From Takakia lepidozioides (Eukaryota > Plantae > Bryophyta), in NCBI GenBank assembly GCA_030704615.1, contig CM060732.1, positions 73,904,001 to 73,968,000 on the forward strand: a DNA stretch of 64,000 nt. Direction: 5' to 3'. Both the position numbers and the translations under genes were made by a program. Shown piece after piece: positions 1 through 64,000 of this stretch. The notes under the pieces are model-generated. The model saw nothing but the letters and a program-made list of their open reading frames with translations. It did no database searches and had not been told where the DNA came from. Position 1 is the stretch's first letter. Each line of letters opens with the position of its first letter.

Positions 1-738
1 AAACCATGACGGCTTGTGCGCTATGGCTGTCATTAAGCCAATTGAACACGAGAGCTGTTTTCATAGCTGCCTTTGAAGTGTAGAGGAGTTCAGCAGGAAT
101 TTCATTCAAGCGATTGCACTTACTTTAGGCTCGATCAAAAAGGAAAAGAATAGGCTGACATATGGTGGTGGTTGATCCAAAGTAAACTCGGGCCTTGTTA
201 GGCAACCTGTTTGGCATCTATACAATGAAGAAGAGCAGGTGTTTTAGTTGTCACTAGGGGACATTGCAACTCAATCTTTGGATATGCAAATGGGAGTTCA
301 AGAGGGTCAAGGTTTGCAGTAAAGGGAAAGGGACGGGGCCTGGACAGGGCTTCAAAGAAAGAACTTGAAGAAACTCTTTCTGGTAGCCGGTAAGGAATAT
401 CAACAGATTCTGGACAAGTCAATATACCACTGTGTTAGTGAACTCTACACTAACCTCTTAAAGGCTACATGTTGAGTGCATATAGTTGCAAACGATGTGA
501 GGACCTGGATTTCAAGAGGGATAGCAAGGTGGTGATCTAGTCACCCTTTCCAACTACATTCACGTAATTGTGTTGCTGAATTTGCTGTGTTCACATGATT
601 AAATGTTGTGGGGTTGCCTGAGACACCCTTTGTAATGCCTTACCTACAGGGTCACAGAAAAAGGAAGATTCTGAAATGCAAGACAATCTGATGAAGATAG
701 AAACTTTATAAGGCCCACAGGGGGATGAGAGTGAGAGA

Positions 739-873
739 AATGAAATGAAATGGTGCTTTATAACGTCCGCGGAAAGCTCATAGAGCTTATGGGACAAAAT
801 GGAAGAAAACATGAGAGAGGAAACAAAACCACAGGCAAAAATAAAAACTATTGCTCGAGTGACTGTCTAAGGG
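739..873 (-). mobile_element. 5'-truncated copy of the (CATTT)n-tailed LINE in an F2KP intron, with 13-bp TSD
   Basis: Matches the 3' end of the LINE at 60714-64000. TGAGAGTGAGAGA occurs at 726-738 and at 874-886. Confidence 0.88.
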
Positions 874-17430: not shown

Positions 17431-17830
17431 GTAATCATCACTTTACCCTAGTAGATCTCTTTTCAGTGCTAGTGGTTCCACAAGGAATCCAATAGCATGA
17501 AAGCTCCAAGGGTTTTCTTTTCTTTCTTTGGTTATTTGGAGGGATTGATTTGCTCAACAGACCAAAAGGAGAATAGCATCACATACCCCACCCATGAGGC
17601 CTTAATAAACCAAGATGAGCCCCAAAGAGCACAGAAACTGGCCATGCTTTATCTTCGTTATCCCAGCTGCACATTTATTACCCTAGAAAAACTCTTCTCT
17701 TTGAGCTTCCTATGGATGCTATAAAGTTTCTTTCTTTCTTTCCGCACACGTTATAAAGTACCATTTCATTTCTATCTTTCTTCCACAATGTCATGGATAT
17801 GTCTAAGTTTGCTCCAGACTATGGCTGCAG

Positions 17831-54307: not shown

Positions 54308-54832
54308 GCCCTAAACCAAACTTCGTTCTTCGAGACTACAGCTCTCAATTTCATCAGGATACCTTTGGCAAGTTTCTCACTCCCTCAATCGATCTCTGTT
54401 AGTCTTTGATCCTTGCAAAGTTCTCTTATTTTAATCATTTGTAAACTCCTCCTCGAAGTGAAAGTGTGACATTGTGTCCACTGAGAATTTTTCAGTTTAT
54501 TTAAAGCTGCCGCCGACCCTTCCTCCCTCCTCTCTTCGGCCTTCATCTCTTCGGATACGAAGAGTGCACTCTAGACTACAATACAGTTTCCATTCACAGA
54601 GTGAATCGTCCATTCACGATTCTTATCATCCATCCACATTGGGGTCTGACGTGGTGGTTTAGGAACCTCAAGTGAGACCTCGATGTCCGACATTGCAAAT
54701 TTTTGGTTTCAATTTCATTTTTGAGATCCTTAATGAGGTGTCGAACGGGGGTGGACTGAAACGAGCGGCAATTTTTGAACAAGACGAGAGGCCAAGGTAT
54801 TGCCCGTTTGCGTTGTGTGTGTGAGAGAGAGA

Positions 54833-54856
54833 GAATGAAATGAAATGGTGCTTTAT
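54833..54856 (-). mobile_element. Tail-only fragment of the (CATTT)n LINE
   Basis: gaatgaaatgaaatggtgctttat next to a (GA)n tract. Confidence 0.6.
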
Positions 54857-54955: not shown

Positions 54956-57900
54956 ATGGAGAAGATATCAGTTTCGATACGAGTACGGCCTCTGAGCAAG
55001 CAGGAAGCAAAGGGGAGTCCGTGGAAACTTGAACATAACTCAATTGCTCTTTGCAATGCCTCCGGGTACCCTATATCCGGCCAATCGTACACGTTCGGTA
55101 TGAGTTCTTCCCATATGTCATGGTTCTGTAATGTTTGTAGCTCCTTGTTGACTATGCTGCAGTTAGGCTTGGCCAATGTTTGGCGACAGTCTCTCTGAGG
55201 GATTTGGCCTTCTGTGAGTGTCCGCTAACCACTGGCTACTATCAACATGAAAAAACATCCTGGTTGGAGACTACTCTAATGTAGAAATGAAATGAAATAG
55301 TACTTTATAACGTCCGCGGAAAGCTCAAAGAGCTTATGGGAAAGAATGGAAAAAAAAAAGAGAGAGGATACAAAACCAGGGCAAAAAAGCAGCCCAAACG
55401 CAACTACTGCTCAAGGGATTGCCTAAGGGTCAAGGCCTCGCGCAGGTAAGCTGCCAAGCATTTCTGATCCTCATAATGGAAGACTTCAGTGAGAGATTGA
55501 GTTCCACGGAATAGACAGTGGAATCTCCCATGGATCTCATAATACAGAGGGCAATAAAAGAAGAAGCAAAGTAGCCCATGATCGGCCAACGCTGACCACA
55601 GCACATTTAGCAGTGGAATGAGGAGACCAGTTGTAGTGAGAGAGAGATGAAATGAAATGAAATGAAATGGTACTTTATAATGACCGCGGAAAGCTCAAAG
55701 AGCTTATGGGACAAAATGGAAAAAACAAGAGAGAGGAAACTAAACCAGATCCAAAAATGAGCCCAAAAGCAACTACTGCTCAAGGGAGAGAGAACTGAAG
55801 ATGGCCCCTGATCGCTTCCCTCACCTACCACTCAATTACTATTTCTCTTCTCACAGTAAGTGTGTCTGTGGTGGGCTCTTCCAACGAGATTGGTTGCTAA
55901 GTCAACCCCGTTGTTCAAGTCAAGGTTCGTGTTTCTCAAAGGTGGATACATTGGCTGTGCATGTGGCTGCAGACCGAGTATTTGGCAGAGAGTCTACGAC
56001 TTTAGACATTTATGAAGCACATACAAAAGACATAATTGCATCAACTGTAAAGGGCTTCAATGGTTTGTGCACCACACCTCAATTTCAGTGATTGTTTCTC
56101 TGGCATTTCTGTTCTACAGCCCTAAGATCTCACATGTTCATGCACATGTCATAGGACTATCAAGCAATTGCTATGGCACGACAAGTTATGGGTTTTCATA
56201 TTTATGTGTGTGCTCCAGTAGTCCAGGATTTTATCTGAATTCTCACAACCACCATCTCCTGGACATTATGCTTTGTGAGTAGGTGAGGCTGGCCCACATG
56301 AGCGGATATTTAGCAAACCTTTTCTCTCTTTGAGTTTAGATGTTAATCTGGAAAGTGCGATGGCAATGTCAGAATTTTTTTGCATGATCATGCAGAGCAA
56401 ATGGGACTATGAAGTGATGTGCAAATGAGCATATTTATTATCTTTGTTGCCAATTTTTTTATTCCTAGACGACTGTGACAATACAGTGCCCTTCTTGCTT
56501 CCTGCATTTAGTCTCCCAGTAATTCCTCAATAGTCTATGGTGTTTAGAGCACATGAATTCCTTTGTCTTGACATGGCTAACTTCATTATTTTCCTTGCCT
56601 ATTCCTCAGGTACTGTTTTGGCATATGGCCAGACAAGCAGTGGAAAGACCTTCACAATGCGTGGAACACTGCAAGAACCTGGGATCATTCCCCTGGCTGT
56701 GCAAGAAGTTTTCAGAAACATTCATATGGTATAACTTGTCAATAAGTTGCTCTAACTGATTTTTGGACGCCAAAGCAACTCCTAAGCAGGCATGACAACA
56801 TATTTGAACTGTACAGGCAGAAAATCGTGAATTTCTTCTCCGAGTGTCATATCTGGAGATCTACAATGAAGAGATCAATGACTTACTGGCTCCGGATAAT
56901 CAAAAACTACAAGTCCATGAAAATCTGGAGGTATGCCAGCAGATTCCTTGAAATCTCGAGGTGACCTATCTGTTTCTGAGTTCAAAGGAATTTAGAGGGA
57001 CCTGGAAAATTAACTGACCTGTCCTGTAATTGGCATGTGAAAAATCTGGAGCATCAAGGGCTGAAGACATCTCTGACATGATGCCTGTGCATGGATTGTC
57101 TACAGCGTGGAATTTTTGTGGCAGGCCTAAGAGAGGAAATAGTGGTCACCCCTGAGCAGGTTCTGGAGCTGACGGAGTTTGGTGAAAGTAAGATATGCTC
57201 GATTGGTCTCTTTTAGACAAGCATGGTGGATATTGTGGTGTGTTGATACTATTAGCTACTAGGTGGACATGCAAATGCTTAACCTTACCTGTCTTGTGCT
57301 TCAACTAAGATGCCGATAAATAGGCTCAGGCAGCGGTTGGTTGGGATCTAAACCGTATGGTGTTGTTGCAGGTCATCGGCATGTTGGGGAGACAAACATG
57401 AATGTTTACAGCAGCAGGTCACACACCATTTTTCGCATGGTAGGGAATTCAGTTTTATGTAACTGTTAGAACAAAGTTTGGTTGGTTCTTGAAAGGTTAC
57501 AGAGGTTCTTGTCAAATTCTTGCATTGCACCCTCTCACTTTTCTCTTCCAGTTGAGATCAATACAAGTTCATTAATGTTATGATCTTTACACTCGTGTGG
57601 TTCTGACATCTCTAGTCTTTATGGGTTTGAAGGTGTGTAGTCAACTTCACACCTTGTGCATATGAATGTACTTGATGGTGCCTTATTTTCTGAGGTGGCT
57701 CTAATACAAGCCAATGAATGCAGGTCATTGAGAGCAGGGACAGGAGCCAAGATGACCCCTCTGGCCCTGCAACTATGCAAGAGTGTGACGCTGTGAGGGT
57801 GTCTGTCCTGGTATGACCTCAATCTGAACCTTTCCATGAGCTTTCTGCGGATGTTATAAAGCACCATTTCATTTCATTTCATTTCATTTCATGATATCTT

Positions 57901-59162
57901 CTAGATTCTAATCCAGAGCTTTGAATCTTTATATTGTTCAGTTTCTTTGTCTGCTGTATTATCCAGTAAGATTTAGAGATTTCAATAGTGGTCTTCTCTT
58001 TGAATGGCCGGTCAAACTGGGCGCGGGGTCAATGGCCACAAGGTTATGGCGAACAACGTCTTATGAGTACATTCTTAGAATGGCCGGTAAATGGTGGAGA
58101 TTTAGATACCATCAATAAAGCTATAGAAAGAATATGTGGTGGAGTTAGCTGTTCTAATACTTGCTAGAAATGTTTGATTTTCTTGCTATAGCAGGTGAAC
58201 TTTTAGTACTGGAAGGCATTACATTGACTACTTTAGTGGTCCCTTGGTCTTAGCCTCAGTAAGTTATTGAATGGCATATGACATTGTACTATTAATTATG
58301 AGTTCAATGTTTGCTTGATTTAGTATCCTGATTGTCTATCCTTGAATGGGTTTGTGCAGAATCTAGTGGATTTGGCAGGCTCAGAGAGGGTGGCCAAGTC
58401 AGGAGCTGAGGGCACGCGTCTCAAAGAGGGAACCCATATCAACAAAAGCTTGATGACTTTAGGAACAGTGATCAACAAACTAAGTGAAGGCATCGAGAAA
58501 CAGGGGTGAGGAATGATTGGTCGTTAGGAACTCATTATCTAGTACTGTAGGAGATTTTAATATTGTGAGATTGTAGACCATTGAGTGTTCTTGTTGTGGG
58601 ACTGTTAGATCTAGACTGTTTGAAAACTCTGTACACCCATTCCTGGTCACAACATGGAATCATCCCAGAATGAAGCAAATGGGTGATGAATGGGAAGCTG
58701 TGTTTTTGTATTTTTCCTTGGAGAGGGGTTCATTGACAAAACCTCAAGGACTCGATACATGGTGTTCCGGTGGATGCAGCGGGCATATTCCCTACCGTGA
58801 CAGCAAACTCACAAGAATTTTGCAACCAGCCTTAGGTGGCAATGCAAAAACAGCAATCATATGCAACATCACACCTGCTTTGGTAAGCTGTACTGATCCG
58901 AAGCTCCTGCATTAGGCTGTCAAAGTGAAATTTTTTGACTTATCGTTATTTCTCATCAAGCTTGCCATTTTGTGTTCTATGTTCTCTCCTTGCTCTAGAT
59001 GCCCTATGCATATGAGGTCCTTGTTTTCTATAACCCCTTCCCTCAATATGTTCTTGAAATGGTAATGGAGAGAATATGCAGGTTCATGTGGATGAGACAA
59101 GAGGCACATTGTACTTTGCGAGCAGAGCAAACTGTGTCACGAATTGTGCCCAAGTTAATGAG
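54956..59162 (+). CDS. Kinesin-7 (CENP-E-like, KIN7N/KIN7O type) motor domain, continuing beyond the window. Exons: 54956-55097, 55973-56062, 56610-56728, 56817-56930, 57106-57187, 57372-57439, 57724-57810, 58360-58505, 58780-58882, 59082-59162
   Basis: IRVRP, P-loop [55 protein letters not shown]. Confidence 0.96.
55284..55566 (-). mobile_element. 5'-truncated (CATTT)n LINE copy (variant 3' UTR) in kinesin intron 1
   Basis: Encodes [18 protein letters not shown]...LRQSLEQ; carries the tail. Confidence 0.9.
55647..55787 (-). mobile_element. 5'-truncated (CATTT)n LINE copy in kinesin intron 1
   Basis: 3' UTR plus tail, flanked by gagagaga on both sides. Confidence 0.88.
57836..57892 (+). mobile_element. 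Very short (CATTT)n LINE copy in kinesin intron 7 (sense orientation)
   Basis: atgagctttctgcggatgttataaagcac followed by (catttc/atttc) repeats. Confidence 0.85.
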
Positions 59163-59186
59163 GTAAGCTTTGTTACTGATTCTAGA

Positions 59187-60712
59187 GAAATGAAATGAAA
59201 TGGTGCTTTATAACGTCCGCGGAAAGCTCGTAGAGCTTATGGGACAAAATGGAAGAAAACATGAGAGAGGAACAAATCCAGAAACCACAATTAATGAGAG
59301 AAATGAAATGAAATGGTGTTTTATAATGTCTGCGGAAAGCTCATAGAGCTTATGGGACAAAATGGAAGAAAACATGAGAGAGGAAACAAAACCAGAACTA
59401 ATGTTCTAGTGATTGTCTAAGGGTGAAGGCCTTGTGCAGGTAAGCCGCCAAGCATTTCTGATCCTCATAGTGGAAGGCCTCAGTGAGAGATTGGGTTCCA
59501 CTGAATAAACAGTGGAATCTCCCACGGATTTCGTAGTACAGAGGGCAGTAGAAGAAGTGTTCTTCAGTTTCAATTTCCTTGCTGCGCCCTATGCAAGCTG
59601 GACATAGGCGGTCCTCCCGTTGCAGGTTTTCCCATCTGCCAGTCTCTATCCGTAGGTTGTGGGAACCCACCCTGAACCGCCCCAATGCCCTCAGGAGGGA
59701 AGGAGATAAGGATGCTGAAAGGTGATTTGGCCTCAAGATTCTATCATCTCGGAGCACCAAGAATGTCTCTCGATAGAAGTGGAGCTTTGTCGTGAGATTG
59801 GGTAGTTTCCAAGTTCTCTTGACATGTAATTCCATAAGCTCTCTCCTAATGAGTCTGTTGCGGTCATGTCTGGATGTGATGTCCACCGCATCTGGATTCA
59901 TTGGTAATAGGAAAGCAGTAGAAAGTCCGTTACGTTGAAATAAACTGTCCACTCAAGCATACCAGGAGTTCCTGAAACCTGCAGCTTTGAGCCTCATAGA
60001 TGTTGTGAGGGCCCTTGCCACGAGCCCCTTGGGTGGAAGGGCCTGTAATCTATGGAGAAAGACTGTAGGCCGGAAGAGGGCCTCGGATTGCAATGGTACA
60101 CATGCGAACTCTGCACCTAGGATCTGAGATGGAGTTGTGCTCCTGGCGCCAAGCATTGCATAGAGAAATGAAATGAAATGGTGCTTTATAATGTCTGCGG
60201 AAAGCTCATAGAGCTTATGGGACAAAATGGAAGAACATGAGAGAGGAACAAATCCAGAAACCACAATTAATGTTCTAGCGATTGTCTAAGGGTGAAGGCC
60301 TCGTGCAGGTAGGCTGCCAAGCATTTTTGATCCTCATAGTGAAAGACATCAGTGAGAGTTTGGGTTCCACTGAATAAACAGTGGAATCTCCCACGGATCT
60401 CGTAGTATAGAGGGCAGTAGAAGAAGAAGTGTTCTTCAGTATAGAGAAATGAAATGAAATGAAATGGTACTTTATAACGTCCGCGGAAAGCTCATAGAGC
60501 TTATGGGACAAAATGGAAACATGAGAGAGGAACAAGTCCAGAAACCACAATTAATGTTCTAGCGAATGTCGAAGGGTGAAGGCCTCGTGCAGGTAGGCTG
60601 CCAAGCATTTTTTATCCTCATAGTGGAAGACATCAGTGAGAGTTTGGGTAGAGAAATGAAATGAAATGAAATGGTACTTTATAACGTCCACGGAAAGCTC
60701 ATAGAGCTTATG
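59187..60712 (-). mobile_element. Five 5'-truncated LINE copies stacked head-to-tail (59187-59296, 59300-60159, 60165-60440, 60446-60649, 60653-60712)
   Basis: Each begins on the + strand with (GAAAT)n and the same 3' UTR, has a different truncation point, and is separated by (T)AGAG or AG. Confidence 0.93.
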
Positions 60713-60713
60713 A

Positions 60714-63700
60714 GAAATGAAATGAAATGAAATGGTGCTTTATAACGTCCGCGGAAAGCTCGTAGAGCTTATGGGACAAAATGGAAGAAAACATGAGAGA
60801 GGAACAAATCCAGAAACCACAATTAATGTTCTAGCGATTGTCTAAGGGTGAAGGCCTCGTGTAGGTAGGCTGCCACGCATTTTTGATCCTCATAGTGAAA
60901 GACATCAGTGAGAGTTTGGGTTCCACTGAATAAACAGTGAAATCTCCCACGGATCTCGTAGTATAGAGGGCAGTAGAAGAAGTGTTCTTCAGTTTCAATT
61001 TCCTTGCTGCGCCCTATGCAAGCTGGACATAGGCGGTCCTCCCGTTGCAGGTTTTCCCATCTGCCAGTCTCTATCCGTAGGTTGTGGGAACCCACCCTGA
61101 ACCGCCCCAATGCCCTCAAGAGGGAAGGAGATAAGGGTGCTGAAAGGTAATTTGGTCTCAAGATTCTATCATCGCGGAGCACCAAGAATGTCTCTCGATA
61201 GAAGTGGAGCTTTGTCGTGAGATTGGGTAGCATCCAAGTTCTCTTGACATGTAATTCCATAACCTCTCTCCGAATGAGTCTGTTGCGGTCATGTCTGGAT
61301 GTGATGTCCGCCTCATCTGGGTTCATTGGTAATAGGAAAGCAGTAGAAAGTCCGTTACGTTGAAATAAACTGTCCACTCGAGCATACCAGGAGTTCCTGA
61401 AACCTGCAGCTTTGAGCCTCATAGATGTTGTGAGGGCCCTTGCCACTAGCCCTTTGGGTGGAAGGGCCTGCAATCTATGGAGAAAGATTGTAAGCCTGAA
61501 GAGGGCCTCGGATTGCAATGGTACACATGCGAACTCTGCACCTAGGATCCGAGATGGAGTTGTGCTCCTGGCGCCAAGCATTGCTTGGAGAAAAGATGAC
61601 TGTAATGGTTCCAAATTCTTTTCCCACCAGGAGACAGGGACACCAGGCGCCCAGAACTCACAACCATAGATGGTAGCAGGGCTGACGACGGTGTCAAACA
61701 GCCACTTTTTGGACGGGGGATGCCGCAGATGTATTTGCTTGCATTTGGCCTGAAGGCGGACGGAGGCCGCCTTGCCTTTAGTCAACCTGTCCAAGGCAGT
61801 GGCTGCAAAGTGAAACTTGGGGGAGTGGATAACCAGACCTAGGTACCGGTATGATTTCACAATCTCAATTTCCTGCTGGTTGAAGATGAATCTACGATCA
61901 GCCTGGCCATTGAAGACCATGATCTTGGTCTTGCTAAGATTGACCTGCATCCCATAGTCTTTGCAGATTCCAAAATTTTGAGATGGCGTTGCAGAAAGAC
62001 CGGGGATTGTGCCAAAAGGGCAACATCATCAGCATAGAGGAGATCTGATTGGGTTGGTCCCCCATCCAATGGGACCCCAACCCCATGGTTTTTTGATATG
62101 TAATTCTCCAAGGCGTCAATGTAGATCCCGAACAGGGTAGGTGAAAGGGGCCAGCCCTGTTTGACTCCAATGTTGCTGTGGATCTCGGCTGAGAATTCAC
62201 CAGCGATGTTGACCATGCCAGTGACAATCTCATACATAGAAGAGATGGCACAAAGGATGTCTGGAGGGACTTCCACTCTATGGAGCCGTTGGAAGAGAAG
62301 GTCCCGAGGAACTGAATCAAAGGCTTTGTGAAAGTCCACGAAGCAAACATAGACCATTCTTTTGTCATAGCGTGCACTTTCCACCATAACTTGAAGAGTG
62401 AAGATGTGGTCAATAGTGGATCGGTTTCGACGGAAACCAGCCTGTCCCTCAGCACGAATGCGAGAGTACTCAGCCCAATCATCCAGTTCCATGGCCACTA
62501 CTGCCCCAAACAGTTTAGCAAGTAATGAGGACACCATGATAGTACGATAGTTTGTCGGTGCGAGCCTGTCACCGCTCTTAAAAAGTGGGTGGATGATGCT
62601 CTTTGTCCACTCTGTTGGAAAGCCCCGTTGCACCACCTCATTGAAGAGGTTAGCTATAAAAGGGGCTAAAGTAGGTGCAGCATGCTTGATGAATTCACTC
62701 TGAAGTCCTGAAATGTCCACCGCTCTGCCATTTTGCAGCTTCTTGATTGCCTTACTGACATTGGCTGTAGTAAAGAGAGAGAAGTGAAGGGGTTTAGAGG
62801 TTATAGGAGAAGGAGTTTGGGTTGGGGAATGGTACAAAGACTGTGCATACTCATGCCAGACATGAATGTCAGTGATTGGGGGGGGATCTCTATGAGGTTT
62901 AAGGAGGGACCAAAAAGATCGAGGAGAAAATCTGATTTTAGCAAGGAAAGAAGATTGCAACTTGATAGTGTAGGCTTGCTTTTTGGATCTAATGAGGGAC
63001 TTATAGTGCTTAAGAGCAAGATTAGTGGACTCTGGAGAAGAATTGGTATCAAGTAGTAAAAATTTGATGCAACGTCTAGCAGTCTTGCATTCCTCATCAT
63101 AAAATGGTGCGTAACGACGAGTGGAGAAGGGTGAGGAGGTAGATGGAAGGGTGACGGGAAAGGATCGCAGGGCTGAGTCCCAAAGGGCTTGAGTAAGATG
63201 TGTAGCCTTGTCGTTAGGAGATGATAGATGTAGAATGGAAGGGAGGGTTGACGCAAGGTATGTTTCATACTCGGCGTCGTGTAAGTGAGAGAAAGGGGTA
63301 TTAAAGTGGATACGTGGGTGTAAGGGAAGAGACGCAGAGGGGATCCTCACGGGGAGGGAGATGGAAGGAAATGCAAAGGAAAGGCAAGAGTGATCAGAAT
63401 CCGGGTACCTCGTGATGTAAAAGGAGCTTATTCTATCCGGCTTGTTGGGGCTCCCCAAGAGATAGTCAACCACGCTTTGGCCCTTGTACGTGTGGCAAGT
63501 GAACTGGCTGGAGGATTTGAAGTTGGTTGTTCCATTGTAAATGGATAGCCCCTGAGTTTCACAAAACTTGAGTAGATGGTGACCGTAACTTGTGATTTCG
63601 CAAGAGGAATCTGCACTTTGCCTCTCCAATTCCGTATGCGAGCGTTGGATGTGTAGAGGATCTGTGTGGTCGAAGGTGGGGGCCTGTAGTGATCCTGTAC

Positions 63701-64000
63701 GGGCGTTGAAATCTCCAACCAAGAAAATGTCCGTTTGTGGGGTACGGAGACAGGCCATATCGTCTTCCAATGGAACATATGGTGAATCTGTTCGAATATG
63801 TAGGCCGCTGTGCGGAGATGTGGCCGGAGCAAAATAACATCCCGCCAGCAGGATGTTGTAGCCTTTGATGTGACACCAAATGTACCTTGCCAGTGGGTCT
63901 TTGTATGGGAAGGAGATAAGTGGGAGAAGCCAGTCAGCAAAGTAACAAGCCACACCTCCAGATCCTTTGAGACCTTTACGTGGACGAATCACTGACTGAA
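60714..64000 (-). mobile_element. Long non-LTR retrotransposon (APE + RT + C-terminal Cys/His domain; RTEX or CR1/L2-like), frameshifted near 61965; 5' end outside the window
   Basis: APE motifs GGVACY, GDFNARTG, VDY, SDH; RT motifs NYRTI, QAGFR, FVDFHKAFDSV, GVKQG(W)PLSP, LLYADD; C-terminal RFRVGSHNLRIETGRW...CPAC...ETEEHFFYCP. Confidence 0.95.

Follow-up and report, generated by a model that had tools for sequence, protein, structure and literature searches.

Several described systems resemble the locus analyzed here. In Drosophila, a tandem R1 array, R1 being a retrotransposon without long terminal repeats (non-LTR), with a duplicated ribosomal DNA (rDNA) target, as well as 'tail-to-internal' tandems of non-LTR elements, have been reported, and a target duplicate in the junction, together with a complete 3' end that abuts a 5' end with another truncation point, was taken as evidence of repeated insertion at one site (McGurk & Barbash 2018, PMC5932611). 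Among long interspersed nuclear elements (LINEs) with an apurinic/apyrimidinic (AP) endonuclease, microsatellites are targeted by Kibi at (TC)n, Koshi at (TTC)n, Waldo, Mino and Dong (PMC3812793; Kojima & Fujiwara 2004), and the TC- and TTC-targeting ones are known from fish (PMC3812793). For RTE-related elements, the microsatellite-like tail was found to correlate with the first bases of the target-site duplication (TSD), the sequence upstream of the nick is T-rich, and the RNA tail was proposed to help in choosing or priming the site (Nishiyama & Ohshima 2018, PMC6007223). In the present work, a stretch of 64,000 nt from the moss Takakia lepidozioides (contig CM060732.1, positions 73,904,001 to 73,968,000), referred to below as the window, was analyzed. 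It carries six LINE copies stacked head-to-tail at one point of a kinesin-gene intron, and this array is probably the product of serial independent insertions that reused one self-renewing site.

The kinesin gene is located on the plus strand, and ten exons (54956-59162) were found by translation, the ATG exon at 54956 being counted as exon 1. The exons were read singly, and four of the ten, the only ones scanned against Pfam (one exon at a time), matched the Kinesin motor domain; exon 10 was too short for Pfam scoring. Exon 10 ends at 59162 (VNE), the GT donor occupies 59163-59164, and 20 nt of intron and the motif TAGAG (59183-59187) precede the first tail of the array. The coding strand of the LINE is the minus strand, i.e., antisense to the kinesin gene. 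An earlier reading made from the letters alone (the sequence-only reading) had placed the array about 24 bp past the exon-10 donor, and the position was confirmed: the array begins 25 nt into the intron, and the exon is indeed the tenth from the ATG.

All six copies (c1 to c6) lie in the same orientation, and the same six units were recovered by Tandem Repeats Finder, by a repeat finder and by a blastn comparison of the long copy with the window. The lengths proposed earlier (about 110, 860, 276, 204, 60 and >3280 bp) agree with those measured (Table 1). With the units anchored on the long copy, the truncation points of c1 to c6 were found 116, 872, 281, 209, ~64 and >3288 nt from the 3' end, and each copy ends in a separate tail of three or four ATTTC units, so the separate (CATTT)n tail and truncation point that the sequence-only reading had ascribed to every copy were recovered. 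The diagnostic single-nucleotide polymorphisms (SNPs) that it had listed were also present; most of them are CpG transitions, and the ctcgtag/ctcatag pair falls in the loop of a hairpin described below.

The junctions between the copies were then compared with the genomic flank. In element orientation, the array runs c6-tail CT, c5-tail CTCTA, c4-tail CTCTA plus T, c3-tail CTCTA plus T, c2-tail CTCT and c1-tail CTCTAGAATC, the last being the genomic flank; in the (ATTTC)n register, the same junctions read T, TCT(A), TCTA plus T, TCTA plus T, TCT and TCTAG. Each of the five internal junctions repeats the first 2-5 nt of CTCTAG, the local flank, which is the pattern that the double-insertion model predicts. 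CTCTA after the tail was absent at all six other family sites in the 64-kb window, which makes the pentamer a property of the locus and not a contribution of the element RNA, as target-site duplication predicts. The array junctions thus appear to be duplicates of the target site and not sequence templated by RNA. In the junction alignment of the six copies, no microhomology longer than 1 nt was found at the 5' junctions. The presence of TAGAG, or part of it, at the junctions had been claimed beforehand, and the coordinates were verified, with the refinement that two junctions hold an extra base; the accompanying claim of reiterated TSDs was supported by the match of the junctions to the flank. 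The possibility that CTCT(A) belongs to the 3' end of the element itself was rejected, because the post-tail bases vary between loci.

Table 1. Coordinates of the array, of the long copy's features and of the other family copies in the window
Feature	Position	Strand	Details
Start of kinesin intron, genomic flank of array	59163..59187	+	25 nt, ends TAGAG (CTCTA in element orientation)
Copy c1	59188..59296	-	109 nt; 3 ATTTC tail units; 5' end preceded by CTCT; 100% identical to c6 over 110 nt
Copy c2	59301..60159	-	859 nt; different subfamily; one CGA>TGA stop; 5' end preceded by CTCTA + extra T; 95.3% identical to c6
Copy c3	60166..60440	-	275 nt; 5' end preceded by CTCTA + extra T
Copy c4	60447..60649	-	~203 nt; 5' end preceded by CTCT(A); one base ambiguous, element or junction (60648/9)
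Copy c5	60654..60712	-	59 nt; tail module only; 5' end preceded by CT
Copy c6	60715..64000 and beyond window	-	>3286 nt; long, nearly intact copy
Flank and junctions	59183-59187; 59297-59300; 60160-60165; 60441-60446; 60649-60653; 60713-60714	+	Flank TAGAG; AGAG; A+TAGAG; A+TAGAG; (T)AGAG; AG
c6 ORF2, upstream piece	61857..63992	-	711 aa; AP-type endonuclease (cut at window edge) and reverse transcriptase
c6 ORF2, downstream piece	60823..61950	-	375 aa, other frame; C-x2-C-x11-H-x3-C motif
c6 two-tier stem-loop	60747..60777	-	(CATTT)n tail starts ~20 nt later
Solo copy	737..831	-	11-bp TSD (GAGAGTGAGAG on + strand); tail junction is exact TTTCTCT
Old degenerate tail-only copy	17738..17781	+	CT-rich site; TSD weak or unclear
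Copy upstream of kinesin	54834..54856	-	23 nt, tail-only; TSD not recognisable
Copy	55284..55563	-	In span upstream of/inside kinesin intron 1; TSD weak or unclear
Copy	55649..55790	-	In span upstream of/inside kinesin intron 1; TSD ~8 bp
Tail-only copy	57838..57890	+	48 nt; opposite orientation; ~25 nt past exon-7 donor; sole site without CT after tail; TSD weak or unclear

A simple tandem duplication does not explain the array. Over 859 positions, 40 differences separate c2 from c6, and within their 253 shared codons 18.5 synonymous and 15.5 non-synonymous differences were counted; the corresponding rates per site are 0.11 (dS) and 0.027 (dN), and their ratio of 0.24 departs from neutrality (P = 2e-4). 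Most of the c2/c6 divergence thus arose under selection in active lineages and not by decay in place. Moreover, c2 agrees with the copy at 55284 in ancestral states, and c3, c4 and c6 agree with one another in derived ones. At least two active source lineages therefore fed the array. Simple tandem duplication, which the sequence-only reading had already set aside, was ruled out by this dN/dS value, by the unlike truncation points, by the order of short and long copies and by the placement of c2 in another subfamily. Two smaller similarities between copies were also seen: the GTACC variant is common to c4 and c5, and the same two CpG-to-CA changes (CCGCAGACAT) occur within the last 50 nt of both c2 and c3 (59322-59350 and 60187-60215), though further upstream the two copies belong to different subfamilies. 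The latter could be due to recurrent decay of CpG sites (a chance of about 1 in 12), to gene conversion between neighbours or to a shared source.

The array is thus like the multiple-insertion tandems of Drosophila in its head-to-tail non-LTR copies, its target duplicate at the junctions and its distinct truncations. It differs from them in comprising six copies from at least two lineages, in occupying an ordinary intron site of a land plant, and in having a pentanucleotide tail and a duplicate of 2-6 nt. The likeness to telomeric arrays that had been proposed is limited to geometry. HeT-A, TART and TAHRE (PMC5932611, PMC5537684) likewise form head-to-tail stacks by consecutive insertions with variable 5' truncation; these elements, however, are added at the ends of chromosomes and have neither an internal target nor a TSD, whereas the kinesin array is internal and intronic with target duplicates at its junctions. 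Its position 25 nt inside a kinesin intron places it outside the telomeric or own-sequence-specific class (HeT-A/TART, TRAS/SART).

Twelve copies of the family were found in the window, from 23 to >3288 nt long, and all of them share one 3' module and tail; 11 occurrences of the tail-end motif were counted, against 0 expected. They represent seven independent sites, i.e., the array, counted once, and six others. CT directly follows the tail at six of the seven (P = 5e-7 at the CT frequency of the window) and CTCT at four (P = 4e-8), and the preference holds with the array site excluded. The post-tail bases at the six other sites are CTCTCAC, CTCTCTC, CTCTCTC, CTACATT, CTATCTT and CATGATA. Where the empty site could be reconstructed, the sequence upstream of the nick is T-rich (GGTTTCT at 737, CCTTTCC at 57838). 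True (CT)n runs are present at only three of the seven sites, one site has no CT, and 27 TTTCTCT heptamers of the window are unoccupied. The family's preference for pyrimidine sites of the CT/TCT type is real, but not strict. In favouring TC-type pyrimidine/purine repeats, the moss element is like the AP-endonuclease LINEs Kibi and Koshi; those are known from animals and have strict sequence specificity, whereas only a preference is seen here, and the likeness is one of features.

These counts bear on the proposal that the junction regenerates a preferred target. The preference itself stood; reuse of the tail-side half-site is only one of two options, as the upstream half-site is regenerated equally well. 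That the sequence AGAGAAATG as such is a required target was not supported, given the empty heptamers, the copy without CT and three solo copies at CT runs that were not hit again.

Serial insertion, the reading we favour, can be set out as follows. One LINE family would have used the same nick site in the intron for six separate rounds of target-primed reverse transcription. Every insertion would have been 5'-truncated differently and would have duplicated a few target bases (CTCTA or a prefix of it), so that the target would be kept on both sides of each new copy and could be cut again, which extends the double-insertion model to six events. On the 3' side, the resident tail would set TTT before CTCT, resembling the TTTCTCT-like sites of the solo copies, and its bottom strand, (AAATG)n, being complementary to the tail of an incoming RNA, may prime better. 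With a nick within the resident tail, the primer would end in (AAATG)n, a full complement of that RNA tail, and the true TSD would consist of part of the tail plus CTCTA, with a length as in the solo copies. Since the TSDs of the solo copies range from ~4 to 11 bp, the 2-6 bp duplicated in the array are within range, and longer if the resident tail portion is counted. Insertion histories that were rightmost-first (next to the downstream flank), leftmost-first (next to the upstream flank) and centre-outward were tried, and all of them fit the junction strings; hence, no insertion order or half-site is claimed from the window. With c6 inserted first and the tail side reused, a CTCTAGAATC... duplicate would be expected at the 5' end of c6; with c6 inserted last and the upstream side reused, a prefix of CTCATAAGC... 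would be expected there.

Several observations weigh against serial insertion. Over 110 nt (59187-59296 versus 60719-60828), c1 and c6, at the two ends of the array, show 100% identity, and the CG in the hairpin loop (the UACG variant) is private to these two among the window copies covering the loop; both features are unexpected under a strictly one-sided insertion series. The extra base at two junctions matches neither flank nor element, and it would fit a non-templated addition at the end of the cDNA. Of three solo copies whose tails join CT runs, an exact TTTCTCT being present only in the one at 737, none was hit again. The window ends (64000) before the 5' junction of c6 is reached. In addition, six of seven hits on one of 28 TTTCTCT-type sites would have P = 4e-7 if these sites were equal, and under preferential attachment the corresponding value for the window is only about 0.09. 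Such extreme clustering implies that resident copies raise the attractiveness of the site, or that the locus is a hot spot, or that the array arose in a single event.

The first of these options leads to a bolder proposal, which we advance only tentatively and hold to be rather doubtful: the resident (CATTT)n tail may act as an active landing pad. The incoming (CAUUU)n would pair with (AAATG)n and thereby position the nick or gain a perfectly matched primer, and arrays would grow by preferential attachment. If this were true, the element would be a self-homing LINE without a fixed genomic target, working in the introns of ordinary land-plant genes.

The single-event option corresponds to the alternative named in the sequence-only reading, i.e., one retrotransposition with serial template switching, in which 110 nt of one RNA would have been copied first, followed by five jumps onto other RNAs of the family at their 3' ends, with the long copy last. 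It counts for this explanation that non-LTR reverse transcriptases (R2) have been documented to jump between templates end to end. It would account for the extreme clustering at one site at once and for the identity of c1 (first made) with c6 (last made) over 110 nt and in their private variant, as if synthesis had begun and ended on the own RNA of the ribonucleoprotein. The junctions, however, copy the local flank, and in two unambiguous cases they do so up to its fifth base, A (chance ~0.06). Acceptor RNAs from elsewhere should lack the array flank, as the flanks of other copies read CTCTC, CTACA, CTATC and CATGA. Moreover, five jumps onto at least two lineages would be contrary to cis-preference, and microhomology between donor and acceptor is absent. 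Template switching is thus disfavoured, and we regard it as unlikely.

Far less probable is a rearrangement after insertion, in which one or two insertions would have been multiplied by unequal crossing-over or slippage between tails and then modified by deletions and gene conversion. Being short tandem repeats, the (CATTT)n tails might misalign, and the changes shared by c2 and c3 and the GTACC shared by c4 and c5 could reflect local gene conversion. The 5' boundaries, however, abut prefixes of the flank exactly, so that deletions would need the same endpoint five times; the dN/dS of c2 and c6 indicates divergence under selection, not decay in place; and short copies stand upstream of longer ones, whereas a duplicated 3' segment would put them downstream. 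An assembly artefact, e.g., a mis-joined or expanded repeat, for which the great abundance of the family and the extension of the array to the window edge might speak, is hardly credible, since length, tail length, SNPs and small indels vary among the six units and the junctions are precise, a picture that collapsed or expanded repeats do not give.

The coding capacity of the element was analyzed on c6, in which the second open reading frame (ORF2) is split into two pieces that overlap near 61950; this corresponds to a single frameshift near 61960, in the reverse transcriptase (RT) region. The pieces were searched separately, as they stand in the sequence. In the 711-aa piece, Pfam detected Exo_endo_phos and Exo_endo_phos_2 at residues 9-202 and RVT_1 at residues 479-676 (4e-24). 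The RT region matched the solved structures of the R2 and L1 ORF2p reverse transcriptases (1e-13 to 1e-20); the PDB matches identify a generic RT only, and the Atlas clusters matching the element were likewise generic RT/endonuclease ones. In the 375-aa piece, eight relatives show no change at C308, C311, H323 and C327 or in the SSHxLxIExGR block before them. Pfam gave no match for this C-terminal piece, nor for the ORF1 of one relative. An exact look-up of the 375-aa ORF in a large protein collection gave no match, and the nearest proteins there by a word-based search (~1000-1200 aa) are only 37-40% identical, so the source genome's own copies are not in the collection. An ORF of 256-428 aa lies upstream of ORF2 in the relatives on contigs L001, L002 and P0001; the 5' part of c6 is beyond the window. 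ORF1 is present in RTE-X, unlike in RTE proper (PMC3905857). With its endonuclease N-terminal to the RT in one ORF, a common 3' end, variable 5' truncation and TSDs, the element is a non-LTR retrotransposon (LINE) of the AP-endonuclease type.

The last ~65 nt before the tail are conserved in all window copies, and the 3' untranslated region (UTR) upstream of this module differs by subfamily. In the second subfamily (55284-55790, 737-831), a different, longer 3' UTR separates the stop codon from the module, which indicates that only the last ~65 nt are constrained. The module is predicted to fold into a two-tier stem-loop, with the outer stem GUCCC/GGAC and the inner stem AAGCUC/GAGCUU (z = -2.8 versus shuffles); the stem is invariant, and variation among the window copies is confined to the loop. 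The region spans 60734-60778 on the minus strand, with counterparts in relatives at L001:5005-5046 and L002:5010-5045. Relatives at 40% protein identity have the same stem-loop architecture and the motif GACGUUA, with compensatory changes at two pairs, and one of them ends in (CTTT)4, not (CATTT)n.

The 'stringent-type' LINEs UnaL2 of eel and ZfL2 of zebrafish have a 3' stem-loop and a short-repeat tail. The moss element is like them in its conserved stem-loop ~20 nt before a tandem-repeat tail and in its tail-only retrocopies; judged by these features, the LINE appears to recognise its own 3' end. With the RTE-related elements it shares a microsatellite-like 3' tail and T-rich sequence upstream of the nick, but its tail is (CATTT)n, not (GTT)n or (CAA)n, its ORF2 has the conserved CCHC motif, and the comparison extends to seven sites. 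A literature search for a moss LINE with a (CATTT)n-type tail returned nothing relevant.

The array is a well-preserved new example from a land plant, and it represents no new kind of element or mechanism. If built by serial insertion, it would be a clean natural example of a LINE that turned one ordinary site into a growing array, with each event recorded in a junction. In a genome of the bryophyte type with the family in great abundance, stacking of this kind would be one means by which introns are enlarged and tandem repeats seeded. The array also bears on the open question of whether the microsatellite-like tails of LINEs help to choose or prime their target, as proposed for the RTE-related elements.

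Finally, five of the seven insertion sites of the family in the window were located in or just upstream of the kinesin gene (54834-54856, 55284-55563, 55649-55790, 57838-57890 and 59183-64000). This clustering may reflect a taste for transcribed or open DNA, or chance. The site at 57838 and the array both begin ~25 nt past a 5' splice site. A compound (GT)n(GA)n microsatellite at 54800-54835, which precedes the start codon of the kinesin gene by ~100 bp, hosts the 23-nt tail-only retrocopy, and (GA)n runs host two of the three copies between 54834 and 55790.

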